Positions 1-6,873 of a stretch of 44,092 bases of DNA are shown here, in pieces. The translations under genes and the position numbers were made by a program. The notes below the pieces were generated by a model that saw only the letters and a program-made list of their open reading frames with translations, was not told the origin of the DNA and made no database searches. Each line of letters starts with the position of its first letter. Position 1 is the first letter of the stretch. The DNA is from Pelomyxa schiedti. Its lineage: Eukaryota > Protista > Evosea. The stretch covers positions 1 to 44,092 of the forward strand of contig JAHLWZ010000133.1 in the NCBI GenBank assembly GCA_020536535.1, in the 5' to 3' direction.

Positions 1-66
1 CCTGGAGCATTTTAGCCACGGAACCATGTACAACTCAGCAATATACTCCAATAGAAGAAGCCCCAC
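1..66 (-). repeat. Exact 66-bp copy of part of an ICMT exon (34810-34875), joined to unrelated sequence
   Basis: cctggagcat...gaagaagccccac is identical at 1-66 and 34810-34875 and diverges at base 67. The copy may extend upstream of the window. Confidence 0.95.
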
Positions 67-664
67 CAGTTGTTGGAGGATCCCCAGGGCTGCGCTTCCC
101 TTCATCCCCATCATCGTCATCATCGTCGTCGTCATCGTCATTGTCGGAATCATCGAAGTCATGGATCAGCACACCGCCACTGGAATCATCACTCTTGGAC
201 GATGCATTTGACAGTGTCCTGTGGCGCACTCGTCCCACGGGTGTCCCAGGAAGCACAGGCGTCAGTGACGGCGTTCCGCTTGCGGAATTCGAACCTCCGG
301 GCGTTGGAGAATGCGACGGAGAGCGGGCGTTGATGGGCGGCGTGCCCAGCTCAGGCGCGGCGGCCACGCTGAGGGCCGAGAGCCGCGGCGTCGGGGACTC
401 GTCCCGGAGGTCCGGGGAGGTGGAGGACGGCTGGGCGTAGAGGGCGGAGGTGGAGCCGTGGTGTCGGTGGTGGTGGTGCTTGTGGTCGCGGGGGCTGCCG
501 GGCGTGCCTGTGGTGTCGGGGGGTGATGATGGAGACGGTGAGGGGGAGGCCGCTGCGGTATCCAGCGAGGAGGCCGAGGACCGACGTGCAACCGTGGGGG
601 TTGTGGCCGCAAGCAACGAGAGGGGCGACGACGGGGCCGTCGTCGAGGGGGGTGTGGTGCTCAT
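67..664 (-). CDS. 5' part of a Ser/Pro/His/Asp-rich hypothetical protein, cut off at the junction at 66/67
   Basis: ATG at 664 (MSTTPPSTT...), GC-rich open frame with poly-His and poly-Asp tracts. It runs out of frame into the ICMT copy and stops. Confidence 0.6.
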
Positions 665-900
665 TCGATGTGTTTCGTATGTCGCCAAGCACCCGATACA
701 AAACAAACAGGAAAAAAAATGGACAAAACTTCACAAGCGAACTGTTTAGTCCCAGTGTCATTGATGTTTATCTTCGTCGAAAAATCGTTTTTTTTTCCAG
801 ATTCAAGTCACTCAGATATCAGCACCAGCAATTTGGCGTTCTTCCTGCCGCGACCAAAGCGCACCGCAATAGATCAACAAACAGCACAGGCACACCCCGC

Positions 901-1352
901 ATGGGCAACCTGTTGTCCGCGTCCAAAGGGACACGAACAGCGACGCCGCGAGCGTCTCCCGCGGTGCCCGACTACGTTTTTGAGATGCCAGAGGACACCA
1001 GGGTGTGCGTCGTGGCCGAGCTACACGCGATTATACGCGCCATTAAGATGCGGCAGGCGTCACTCTCGCAGGAGGAAACACAGAACGAAGTGGCACCGGA
1101 GCCCATCGCCGAGTCGGTGCCTGGGGAGGAGCAAGGGGAGAAGGGGAAAGAACCGGACGCGTGTGGGGGCGCAAGTCCAGGGGCCGCGGTGGAAGCGGCG
1201 CCCGCGGCGGCGCCAATGACTGTGGACGACGTGTTGGGGAGGTTCACTATGAGAGAGCAGCAGGACATTTTCGAACAGTTGGGCGCCCGCTGTAGGATAG
1301 ATGTTTTTCGGCAGATGTCAAACCCTACTTCAGACCACTTTATGTTTCTGAG
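901..1352 (+). CDS. Exon 1 of a predicted N-myristoylated hypothetical protein; its 3' exons appear to lie at 26880-27158
   Basis: MGNLLSAS fits the MGxxxS myristoylation consensus. Open frame to ...FMFLR with a GT donor at 1353 (phase 2). Confidence 0.7.
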
Positions 1353-1458
1353 GTTTTTTTTTTTTTCCCCTGTTTTCCCCTCTTTGCCTATTCTCCCAGG
1401 ATGGCTTCATTTCTAACACTTTATTTCCTTTCTGTGTTTTTTTCTTTCACTTATCCAG

Positions 1459-4400
1459 AGGAGGAAGATGAAGGTAGAGGCCCCTCCATTCCACACGTTG
1501 TTGACTGTGCACAGATGAATCTGATGATGCAGATTTGACTGTGGAACAGAAATTGGAGAAAGAAAAAAGCCAAGTTGCTCATTGCAAAGTAACAATTGCA
1601 AGTTTGATTGAGCAGATCACAACATACCAGCAGTATGTGGCACTTTTCATTGTTAAGAGAAGTAAGTTGTGTTAGAGTGATGGAAGAAGTGCGAGAAAAT
1701 GAACGAAAAGCTCAACAAGAACTCGAACAGGTTACCCTGCCACATGAAATATATATCTCATATACTTGCAGCAATTGGAACAAGAAAAGCAAAAAAGTGA
1801 AAACCTACGACAACAAACTGTAACACAACTACAGTCTTTGTTGAGTGAATTATCCTCCATTGACCAGGCACCAACTATTTCTGCCATACCCTTGTTACTG
1901 ACTGTGATCAGGCAAATAAAATACTGAATTTTGAACTGGAAACAGAAAAGAAAGCACACTCCGCCACACTTCAACAACTGCAAGAACTAAAAGAAGATGT
2001 CCAAGATACTCCTAGCAGGGTATCCCCAAGCATTTTTTGAGCTTTTCCAATCCAATTTAATAGGGTGTACTTATGGATTCAGACCAACAAATTAAGTTAA
2101 ATATACAAATCAAAGGAGGTAAAATAAAAGTTGTTGAGTTAGTGGAAGATGCTCAGTCAGGTATCTCATTGCTCCCATTTAGACTCATTTAATGTCAGTC
2201 AGCTGAAAAAGACCTTGGAGAGGAAAACATGTTCTTAACACAGAAATGTTGTACTCTCATGCAAGAAAAACAGCAATTAGAAAATGAATTGACACAGTGC
2301 AAAGATCAATGTAAGAGCTCTTAAGTAGGAGTGACATATGCCGCTTTAGATGCTAACTTGCCTCTACAGGTGATGCAATGCAACAGAAATTCAAGTTTCT
2401 TGGTGATAAAGTTCGTGATGCCCAAACTGCTATGAACGAACAACTAGAAGAAGAAAGGAGGCAAAATGACCTCATGGATGAAGCTGTAACCGTGTTACGC
2501 CAAATGCTTGGAGGAAAGGCAGAGGTTTAGTACAAAATAGTGAGGAGCAACAAGCTTACATATTTTAAGTATGCTATTTCTACCCTTCCAGAGGCCTACA
2601 GAAAAAGGCTACTAAAACCTCTGAAAAATTCTCCTGTTAAGCCACTGACACCTTCCTTCCTTGCAGAAGAGGTAACACCACCTCCTCTCCAAATTTAGGG
2701 TGATAACTCTTTTTTTTCCCCATTTTTTTTTCTAGTTCATTCCTCCACCTGCTGCCCCACCTCCCATGAGCAACACTGTTAGAATTACGTCACACAGTCG
2801 ACCAACGATTCCAAATTTCCAACACCTCCCTCCTCCGCAACCAGCTCCTCCTCCCACCATTTCTACATCTACCCCTTCTGGAGTTATTGATGAGAAACAA
2901 TGGATTGAAATGGCAAAAAAGATAGGGCCTCCTGAACCCCACAAACCGACTTTCGATCCAACCTTTTCCCATGAAGAGTATAAGAGGTACATGCAAGAAA
3001 GGAAAGTATATGATGAATGGGAAGAAGCCATTGCTGAAATGAGTAAGAATTTGGCTAAAAATGCCTCCATAATTGGCCTGCCACAGCATCCAGGTGCAAG
3101 GCCAATACAGACACCACGTGGTCAGACAACCAACATCCCTCCCCCGTTAGTCCCCACCTCCGCTGCTGCTTTAACCAAAGTAAAAATACCCCCTCCAGCA
3201 AATACTGTGCTGCAGCCTCCCCCAGGGCCCACACCACCTCCATTGCCCACACCCACGCCAGGACCAACACCCACACTACCGCCACCAGCAGTAACACCCA
3301 CACTGCCACCATTATCCACCCCCGCACTGCCTCCAGTACCAACCCCCGCGCTGCCCCCACCAGTACCAACCCCCGCACTGCCTCCAGTACCAACCCCCGC
3401 ACTGCCGCCACCAGTACTCACCCCCACACTGCCTCCACCAGTACCAACACCACCCCCACTCTCTTCATCACCGCCACCACCATCGGTAACACCACTTCCA
3501 ATATTGCCTCTACAGACTCTGCAAGAGATAGCACCGCCACCATTAAGTACAGCACCCCCTGAAACTTCCACCCCTTTCACTGGTTCAGCTTCAGCCTCAT
3601 CTTCTGCCATAGCCGTTCCTGCGTTTTCCCCTCCTCCCTCTCCCCCGTTACAAACATGTAACACAGCTCTTGAAGCCCCAATTGAGGCGCCCCCAATTTT
3701 GCCACCTGCATTCATGTTGAGAAGCTCGACACAAGAAGAGAAGTCCCGAGCTGCTCAGGTTGTGGAAGGACTGCTTGAAACTGTCTGCGCTCCAAAAGAG
3801 GAAAAGGTTAGAAGCACAGGAACTTAGCAGACGTAACTAAAACAACAAAGATCGAAGAAGCCTTTTCCGATGAGAAGCCTGCAAAGCAAGCTGTAACTGC
3901 AGGCCCTGTTACCTGCATGATTTTGTGCCCCAAACATGTATGGGTTGGTTCTGGAGGGAAACCAGGCTTCATACAGCTTTTCGACAAAGAGGTCTTTGCC
4001 ACTTTTGAGGCTTTTTATGGTTAACTTATTTTTTCCCTCTTGAACTGTGTAGACAGCAGTACTTTCTAAGGAGTTGAAAATTCCAGCTGGAGTACACAAG
4101 TTACTTGCTGTTGCAGCATCAGCAGTGTGGGTAACCAGTGACGATAACATGATAAGGGTCTTCAACATGCTGGTATCTCTGTTACAGTCACATACATTCT
4201 TATTGTTACTATAGTCACCTTCATTTGGCCGCGAACTTTCAGGGCATTCACGTCCAATTGTAGATTTAACGAATGTTAATGACAAGCAAGTTTGGTCAAG
4301 CAGCTCTGATATGACCCTGAAAATCTGGGCTGTTGATGTAATCATACTTGCTCTTTTTAACAATTGTCTAACAATTACGTAGACATTAGCTTGTTTAAAG

Positions 4401-6873
4401 ACAATAGAGTTCCACACATTAATACAAAGAACCCTTTTCCACAACCCAAATTTGTGGATTGGCACACCACAAGGGATATATACCTGTGATATAAATGTAA
4501 GCTTAGTCTTTTTATCGTGAGTATTTAACGTTTCCAATAGTCCCGAAAAATTACGGAACAACCTCGAGAAAAGAACTCTGTGACAGCAATGGTCTATGTG
4601 AGAGGGAGAAATGTGGCTTCAGATGAAATTTGGACAGCACACGCAAATAATTCAATTGTTGTATGGGATGCAGTGGTGTGTATCTCCTTCCCTCCCTCTT
4701 CTGTATTCCCACTGTCAACAGCAAAAAACACTTGCAACCAAATTTTCTGCAGTTCGAGTTCAGGATTTACTATGCATTGGGCAACGAGTTTGGAGTTGCT
4801 CTTTAGATAAGGTAACTTAACTGTAAATGCAAATGATGTAACCAGTTTTAATTATTTTTTTAAAAAGGCCATCAGAGTGTGGGATGTGAGGGTATGCACC
4901 CCTTAAAAGATTTGTTTACTTTATCTGAGCTTATCAGACCAGAGATTGCTTATCTACAATCTTCAATGGGCACTCAGGGTTCATGACCTGCCTATTACTA
5001 GTGCCTGCTCGTCTCAACTCTTCCATATGGAGCGGTATTTTTTATTTGGTCAAATATGATTTCACCTCATTTTTTTTAAAAAGCATCTGACGATCGAAAG
5101 ATCTGCGTTTGGGAAACTCATTTCGGAAGTCATGACTTCCAACATCATACGTTGAAAGTGAACTCACATTGTACTGTTTGCTACAAGTCTATTGGACAAG
5201 GAAAAACTGCTTACCAATGCAGAGGTTGGTTTCACACTCAGAATTATATCAGGCATCTAACAAAATATCTATACAGTGTGCACTGAAGTTTATGTACATC
5301 CTAAATGTGTACCACTGGTTCCTCCCAATGACTTGTGCATACCAGTACTGCATGCCATAAAAATACCCTCCGAGGCGTTGAGACTCAAAGCAACACCTCC
5401 GCTCTCTCCGGCTCCTACACGAGCAACGTCTAATGGCGATTTACACACTTTCCTACGATTAAGTTCAGAGGGCAAACGCCCACCCCTATCAACAATACAA
5501 TCAATCCCATCCCCTTCTAGTGTTCCCACCAGCACCCTCGTTAACATACCACCTCCCACCACACCTCCACCCAATACCACTAATGGCAGTAGTAGTGGAA
5601 CTACATCAGGAAGCAACTGGGAAGGAAGTACCAGTAGTAGCAACTGTAGCACTTACGGCGGCAGTACTGGTGCTAATGTTGTCACCGATTCCTTTTTGCG
5701 TGAGTTCAAAGAAAATCCAGAGAGTGCTGTACAAAAACTTGTAGTAGACAACAATGCCAAATCTGTGAGTTCCAGCTAGAACTTTACACCAACTTAAGCA
5801 AACCTGTAGATTGCACAACTTCTTGTGGATAATTCTTCAACACTAGACAGAGTGGCATTAAGTGATTACCTCTCCGATAGAACTGATGTGTTACATGAAT
5901 TTGCACAGCTCCAAGACTTTTCCATCTTAGATTTTGAGATGGCCCTGAGGCGTTGGGTTGGCCTCTTTATTCCCCCTAGATCTTCCCAGAAGATGGAAGC
6001 TGTATTACATGAGTTCGCGCAACATGCCTATGCTACACTTCCAGAGCGCGACATGTTTTCCGAACCTGAAGTCATCCGAGTTTTGGCCACTGATTACTTG
6101 GCGCTGAATTCCTCTCTTCACGCACCACAAACTGTATTTAGAACTTCAATGCAAAAATGGGTAGAAACGCACACTACCGTCAACAATACAGAATTGCCCA
6201 GGTTTCATCGATCACTTGAATTTGAAAAACCTTAGCGATAACAGAGACTTCCTGGAGCATCTTTACAATCAACTTTTGGACTGCCAACTTGATCCTATGA
6301 ATCTGGCTCAGTCACCCATTATGCAAGGCATGCTCACAAAGAAAGGCAATGTTACAAATAGCCCTAAGTGGTGTGTGCTCACACGCACACAACTGAACAT
6401 TTTCAAAACAGCCAAGGCATGTGAAACCCCCAACTCTCAATCAATACAACTCCCCAGCTCTAACTAACACCGAACTCCCATTAACCCTCCAGGCACCCAT
6501 GGCTGACTACATGCTTCTTACACACACACTCGCAGCGAAACGAAACACACCCACCACCATAATCCTCCTCACGCCATCATCAACCACCGCGCTCTTCCTC
6601 CTTTGTAAATCAGTCTACACCGCCAATGCGTGGATGCGTGCACTGACTGCCGCATCAGCAGCCACATCACACATATTCACAGCACTCCCACCGCCTTCCC
6701 CCTCGACCTCTCCCTCACCTTCACCCTCGGCAGTACCTACTCCACCTTCAACACACACCCACACACTCCCTTTACCAACAAGTGCAACTCCACTGTCACC
6801 CTCACCTTCTTATAGGCATTCCTCCCACTCGCGGTCACATTCACGGGATGGAGGTAGAGACAACAAGGGGTGA
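1459..6873 (+). CDS. Multi-exon coiled-coil / proline-rich / WD40 / Sec7-like / PH protein (5' end probably missing)
   Basis: Coiled-coil exons 1.5-2.5 kb; Pro-rich ORF 2766-3789; WD-type repeats (SGHSRPI..LKIWAVD, GHSGFMTCL..ICVWE); Sec7 helices (LDRVALSDYL, LRRWVGLFIPPRSSQKMEAVLHEFA, LALNSSLHAP); PH-like QGMLTKKG..KWCVLTRTQLNIFK..NAWMRAL; stop at 6873. Confidence 0.8.
3290..3460 (+). repeat. Coding tandem repeat of 24/27-nt units encoding (P)PVPTPALP
   Basis: Recurring ccagtaccaacccccgcactgcc units in the Pro-rich exon; boundaries approximate. Confidence 0.85.

Follow-up and report, generated by a model that had tools for sequence, protein, structure and literature searches.

Can a Sec7 domain that lacks its catalytic glutamate still act on Arf, and if it cannot, what is it kept for? 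The question is raised by a gene on scaffold C133 of the amoeba Pelomyxa schiedti, located in the window analysed here (the whole 44,092-nucleotide stretch of contig JAHLWZ010000133.1). In Sec7 exchange factors, the glutamate (the glutamic finger) inserts into the nucleotide site and expels GDP, and its mutation inactivates the domain (PMC6724607, PMC2823772). This residue is usually called invariant, and natural exceptions have rarely been analysed, human BIG3 being the main one.

The region 5700-6420, which contains the domain, is eukaryotic coding sequence interrupted by short introns. It belongs to a gene on the + strand extending from about 1505 to 6873, with ~21 exons separated by introns of 34-76 nt (Table 1). 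The start codon lies further upstream; 1505 is the minimum 5' extent of the gene. The domain order is a coiled-coil-like region, a Pro-rich exon, a WD40 propeller, a C1 finger, a linker, Sec7, PH, and a low-complexity tail. The initial annotation had already described a WD40/Sec7/PH architecture from the letters of the sequence; domain matches agree with it and add the C1 zinc finger, which it had missed. Searches were made with the C133 gene exon by exon, and whole-protein analyses used the public protein of its paralog on scaffold C68 (Pelo_856, here P0001). Evidence for the propeller in the C133 gene itself consists of weak Pfam matches on single exons, while beta-propeller families reach an E value of 1e-21 on P0001, and the Mastigella relative P0003 passes the PF00400 cut-off. 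The C1 family PF00130 scores 22.1 bits on the first half of the finger alone and 28.1 bits on P0001 (cut-off 26.5). We take the C133 finger to be atypical, with shorter spacing and no Pro at the lipid-binding position. The PH domain adjoins Sec7 directly and is encoded by two half-exons, each a weak PH match; its counterpart in the C68 paralog, 79-91% identical, scores 30 bits (cut-off 25.1). A 34-nt intron (6202-6235), likewise in frame, is an alternative to the second Sec7 intron listed in Table 1. The intron within the PH domain is of the GC-AG type, which makes up 1.59% of introns in the P. schiedti genome (PMC8887013). Upstream of the gene, window positions 1-1400 are GC-rich (53%) and carry overlapping long open frames on both strands with Arg/Gly-rich translations; this stretch looks like low-complexity sequence.

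Table 1 Features of the Sec7-PH gene on scaffold C133, in window coordinates. Motif 2 residues follow ARNO numbering.
Feature	Position	Strand	Remarks
N-terminal helical (coiled-coil-like) region	1505..2690	+	~8 short exons; 79-94% identical to P0001 exon counterparts, stop-free
Coiled-coil-like exon	1514-1639	+	present in the C68 paralog locus, omitted by the NCBI model
Large Pro-rich exon	2736..3809	+	conserved block ~2900-3090 common to the whole WD40-C1-Sec7-PH family; no match to any Pfam family
WD40-type beta-propeller	3854..5130	+	~9 short exons, 68-91% identical to P0001
C1 (phorbol-ester/DAG-type) zinc finger	5131..5338	+	5131-5224 plus 5277-5338, interrupted by intron 5225-5276 (52 nt)
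Ser/Thr/Pro-rich linker	5339..5686	+	57% identity to C68 paralog
First Sec7 helices (exon end)	5687..5764	+	Pfam Sec7 match begins at 5687 when the intron is read through
Intron, 45 nt, GT-AG	5765..5809	+	in-frame stops; position as in NCBI model of C68 paralog
Sec7 core exon	5810..6201	+	Pfam E 4e-20
Degenerate catalytic loop FIPPRSSQKME	5966..5998	+	Arg (5978-5980) for Gly; Ser, TCT (5981-5983), for the glutamic finger
Degenerate motif 2 (helix H, Arf-binding groove)	6068..6127	+	Y186R, M194A, N201A
Intron, 43 nt	6202..6244	+	junction ELPR/DFLEHLY as in NCBI model of C68 paralog
Last Sec7 helix, short linker, first PH half	6245..6416	+	91% identity to C68 paralog, among the best conserved
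GC-AG intron, donor GCATGT	6417..6492	+	same donor at same PH-domain position in C68 paralog (L019:7138-7258)
Second PH half (to ~6660), Ser/Pro/His-rich tail, stop	6493..6873	+	TGA 6871-6873

The assignment to the Sec7 family is firm. The open frame of the core exon (5810-6232) matches Pfam Sec7 (PF01369) with 72.5 bits (E 4e-20, cut-off 22), and the match through the intron reaches 81.6 bits. Among all PDB chains, the top phmmer matches of the exon are cytohesin-1 and ARNO. The catalytic loop reads TTT ATT CCC CCT AGA TCT TCC CAG AAG ATG GAA in frame 3, the same codons at exactly the same coordinates as first annotated. Its translation FIPPRSSQKME aligns without gaps to FRLPGEAQKID of cytohesin-1/ARNO, confirming that Gly155 is replaced by Arg and the finger, Glu156, by Ser. 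The loop contains no acidic residue; the nearest one, the Glu in QKME, lines up with Asp161, a position conserved in its own right. The finger codon TCT differs from GAA and GAG at all three positions, so a single-base sequencing error is excluded.

The loss extends beyond the finger. Among the best 150 database representatives found with the Sec7 exon, all but 3 have Glu at the finger column. Comparison with 148 canonical Sec7 domains identified five columns that are 96-100% conserved there and altered in the C133 gene (G112S, L153P, G155R, E156S, and R162A), as well as the changes Y186R, M194A, and N201A. Residue numbers follow ARNO, with the aligned finger set to 156, and were compared with what we take to be the positions of known BFA-sensitising mutants. 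Relatives of the same architecture that have the canonical motif retain every residue changed in the C133 domain. Because the finger, R162, and the loop glycine are all lost, canonical exchange activity of the C133 Sec7 domain is very unlikely, and we infer that it does not release GDP from Arf in the canonical manner. Groove and loop residues with 84-100% conservation among canonical domains (Y186, M194, N201, L153, G155, and R162) are changed as well, so that canonical Arf binding is also doubtful. In its original wording, the initial proposal of an inactive Arf-binding scaffold or effector is therefore not supported.

The fold has nevertheless outlasted these changes. An AlphaFold2 model of the Sec7 core exon has a pLDDT of 88, and Foldseek superposes it on the cytohesin-1 Sec7 domain (4a4p) with a TM score of 0.85 and an rmsd of 1.8 A over 129 columns, so that the all-helical Sec7 fold is kept in the model despite the lost catalytic residues. 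The Sec7-PH tandem of the C68 paralog was modelled with a pLDDT of 87.8 and a pTM of 0.86, the model resting on nine sequences only, and its best structural matches are the Grp1 and BRAG2 tandems. In this nine-sequence model, the predicted orientation of Sec7 and PH is unlike that in Grp1 and BRAG2, with whole-tandem rmsd values of 17-22 A.

To see how the gene has evolved, we compared it with its closest paralog, Pelo_856 on C68, which has Ala at the finger. The NCBI model of Pelo_856 was mapped to the C68 locus, and its exons were then placed one at a time on the C133 window, where 20/20 mapped exons have collinear, stop-free counterparts that are 53-94% identical. One further exon (L019:2551-2676 in C68; window 1514-1639; 79% identity between the two) matches the N-terminal region of P0005 and is absent from Pelo_856. 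Pelo_856 begins at the next exon, so the NCBI model is probably truncated at its N terminus. In all 16 ungapped segments of the comparison, pN is 0.035-0.215 and pS is 0.42-0.90; synonymous sites are saturated, for which reason pN and pS are given instead of dN/dS. The low pN beside saturated pS in every segment indicates that both copies have been under purifying selection since the duplication, and the Sec7 exon is no exception (pN 0.17, pS 0.78). Amino-acid identity between the two genes is 68% in the Sec7 exon, against 92% in C1, 79-91% in PH, and 79-94% in most coiled-coil exons, the last three being the best conserved parts, and the Sec7 exon evolves several times faster than these. Its most diverged stretch is the catalytic loop, in which 6 of 11 residues differ (FIPPRSSQKME vs FISLKAPPKME) between flanks that are almost identical. 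Both genes still have some of helix H as well as the LN.SLH.P signature, and with helix H fairly conserved between them a binding surface could survive.

To place the loss in time, we searched 1.84 billion representatives exhaustively with the Sec7 exon. P0001 is the sole close relative (68%), followed by a steep drop. LPGE is present in each of the next relatives that have the WD40-C1-Sec7-PH layout: transcripts P0003 and P0075 of Mastigella eilhardi, the P. schiedti protein P0005 encoded on C93 (named 'Cytohesin-3' at NCBI), P0030 from environmental contigs, and probably also P0002, from an environmental contig with an open frame that covers the C1 end, Sec7, and the PH start only. The domain set of the C133 gene recurs in P0151, P0005, P0003, P0075, and P0030. 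Word searches of the protein collection were also made. With P0001 the product of the C133 gene was not found, which means that it is unannotated, split, or withheld; with the Sec7 exon, for which this search sees similar-length proteins only, there were no matches; and with Mastigella P0003 no more family members appeared, only generic WD40 proteins. An intron-less canonical WD40-C1-Sec7-PH gene lies at locus 3001-5571 of L023 (ENA ERZ15610562, NODE_796), a 52-kb eukaryotic environmental contig, and the family therefore extends beyond Pelomyxa and Mastigella. Its known occurrence is so far limited to pelomyxid amoebae and two environmental contigs.

The P. schiedti genome contains 18 Sec7 loci, 12 of them with the Glu finger. 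The other six have Ser (the C133 gene and C761), Ala (C68), Asp (C1006 and the GBF1-like C455), or Asn (C797). Four of these, C133, C68, C761, and C1006, form a Pelomyxa-specific clade of finger-less paralogs and have in common the replacement of G112 by Ser or Cys. A tree of full-length public proteins, in which P0001 represents the C133 gene, groups C68 and C1006 as sisters (100/99), followed by C93 (Glu) and then Mastigella (Glu); C761 is collinear with C1006. That the two finger-less pairs (C133/C68 and C761/C1006) are sisters is shown by this full-length tree but not by the Sec7-only tree, in which the stem branch to C133/C68 is long (1.18). Because C93, M. eilhardi, and the two environmental contigs all keep LPGE, the loss arose inside the Pelomyxa lineage; together with the tree, the collinearity, and the shared G112 change, this means that the catalytic site was lost once. 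The dead Sec7 module has since outlived at least two rounds of duplication under purifying selection. In the ortholog search called for in the initial annotation, the finger loss thus proved to be shared among P. schiedti paralogs, but an ortholog with the same substitution outside this species was not found.

A Sec7 domain that naturally lacks the finger is rare but not unprecedented. In human BIG3 (ARFGEF3) the Sec7 domain is naturally without FRLPGE and the essential Glu, its orthologues conserve this state, and GEF activity has been proposed to be absent (PMC4096751). However, BIG3 is a large BIG-type animal protein, whereas the C133 gene encodes an amoebal cytohesin-type Sec7-PH protein whose loss is independent. 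A further known protein close to this case is FBX8 (F-box plus Sec7), which is cytohesin-derived and was reported to lack GEF activity in vitro (PMC6724607); it differs from the C133 protein in accessory domain and lineage. Two unrelated non-Glu cases occurred among the best 150 representatives. One is P0011, an F-box-Sec7 protein of 501 aa from public read assemblies with LPRSS at the loop, which converges on the RSS of the C133 gene. The other, P0056 (Massospora cicadina KAI0244268.1), is a fungal BIG-like large GEF with a Ser finger (LPPSA).

By sequence and structure the best match of the C133 Sec7 exon is with the cytohesins (ARNO/cytohesin-2, Grp1/cytohesin-3), which consist of a coiled coil, Sec7, and PH, and which share with it a Sec7-PH tandem behind an N-terminal helical region. 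Unlike cytohesins, the C133 gene has a WD40 propeller, a C1 finger, and Pro-rich regions ahead of Sec7, and has lost the glutamic finger and groove residues. A parallel in organization is found in the ankyrin-repeat cytohesins (ARCC) of Amoebozoa, a lineage-specific subfamily in which a repeat domain was added before Sec7-PH (Pipaliya et al. 2019). Both ARCC (for example, P0007 and P0008) and the C133 family are lineage-specific, cytohesin-derived, and equipped with a repeat domain ahead of the tandem; however, ARCC have ankyrin repeats in place of WD40 and C1, and their catalytic motif is canonical. PH strands 1-2 of the C133 protein, where a basic phosphoinositide-binding signature would lie, contain only KKG...PKW, as opposed to the basic motif K-x-W-K-R-R-W in the ARCC rows of the alignment. 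The initial annotation knew of no Sec7-PH protein preceded by a WD40 propeller. This holds for the literature searched: the term 'WD40' has no occurrence in the 2019 eukaryote-wide ArfGEF survey (PMC6727740), the WD40-C1-Sec7-PH layout is absent there, and it was not found in the other literature searched either. It does not hold for databases, where such proteins from Pelomyxa and Mastigella lie unremarked. The cytohesin-derived WD40 plus C1 architecture is thus so far undescribed.

What, then, is the finger-less domain kept for? The C133 protein belongs to the Sec7 family by sequence and fold, yet it lacks the defining residues of a competent ArfGEF, and it appears to be a cytohesin-derived pseudo-GEF in a lineage-specific architecture. 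The term pseudo-ArfGEF used in the initial annotation is well supported by the replacement of the finger and at least seven near-invariant residues, by the four-paralog clade, and by purifying selection. The gene is an intact, selection-maintained member of the finger-less clade, and we consider it reasonably probable that its product is a non-catalytic scaffold keeping the targeting, partner-binding, and oligomerising parts of the family. In such a protein, C1 and PH would provide membrane targeting, the WD40 propeller and Pro-rich region would bind partners, and the putative coiled coil would mediate oligomerisation. The Sec7 domain may be retained chiefly for a structural reason, as partner to the Sec7-PH junction, which is tightly conserved, and the protein would modulate active paralogs such as C93 or compete with them. 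A role of this kind, as scaffold or regulator, seems most likely from the analogy with other pseudoenzymes.

A narrower proposal is that the four finger-less paralogs serve specifically as pseudoenzyme regulators in Arf signalling, acting by pairing with active exchange factors through the coiled coil conserved across the family, or through a remodelled groove that binds a new partner. We regard this as speculative. If true, the finger-less paralogs would tune Arf activation at the membranes of a giant multinucleate anaerobic amoeba, and the Sec7 family would gain its first regulatory pair of a pseudo-GEF and a GEF.

Alternatively, the dead domain may still bind Arf-GDP or nucleotide-free Arf without nucleotide release, and so sequester Arf or serve as its effector or scaffold. 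Such behaviour is documented for ARNO, in which the finger mutants E156K and E156A are inactive and form abortive Arf-GDP complexes (PMC6724607, PMC2823772), and it is consistent with the intact predicted fold and with the parts of helix H and the LN.SLH.P signature that C133 and C68 keep. However, Y186R, M194A, N201A, L153P, G155R, and R162A replace residues conserved in canonical domains, motif 2 is largely gone from the sister pair C761/C1006, and the old catalytic loop drifts freely between paralogs. Because several groove residues are replaced and the loop drifts in this way, we judge an Arf trap unlikely and prefer the reading as a non-catalytic scaffold or regulator.

Less probable still is that the C133 protein remains an active exchange factor, by a non-canonical mechanism or on a different GTPase substrate. 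The purifying selection that still acts on the Sec7 exon and the canonical state of other family members are compatible with activity, but the loop and its neighbors offer no acidic residue, the Sec7 Glu is described as invariant and required, R162, 100% conserved elsewhere, is lost too, and the stem leading to C133/C68 is long. Finally, a decaying pseudogene or a sequencing or assembly artefact is rejected as highly improbable: the assembly was made from amplified single cells (PMC8887013) and the C133 product is missing from the protein collection, but the mapped exons are intact and collinear, all domains show a strong depletion of non-synonymous change, TCT shares none of its three bases with a Glu codon, and three other loci have independent non-Glu states.

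If the C133 protein is a non-catalytic scaffold, the finger-less clade shows that selection can maintain a Sec7-PH module for something other than catalysis. Active and finger-less members of one multi-domain family coexist in one genome, a natural experiment that makes matched active/dead pairs available for testing the role of the dead Sec7-PH module. The family also adds a WD40 plus C1 architecture to the catalogue of lineage-specific ArfGEFs. To our knowledge, P. schiedti cannot be genetically manipulated, and in an obscure free-living amoeba of this kind the practical impact is modest.

Two other non-Glu loci of the genome were noted. L017/L022 (G000:C797:100500-110400) is a divergent WD40-Sec7-PH member with an Asn finger (LPPNNDKK); it sits on a very long branch and resembles P0001 and P0005 weakly, though in collinear order. 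L003 (G000:C455:2844-6191; Sec7 exon at locus 1513-1911) is GBF1-like and has an Asp finger (FKLPIDS); its branch in the Sec7 tree is long. If C455 encodes the sole GBF1 of P. schiedti, an essential Golgi GEF may function with Asp at the finger position.
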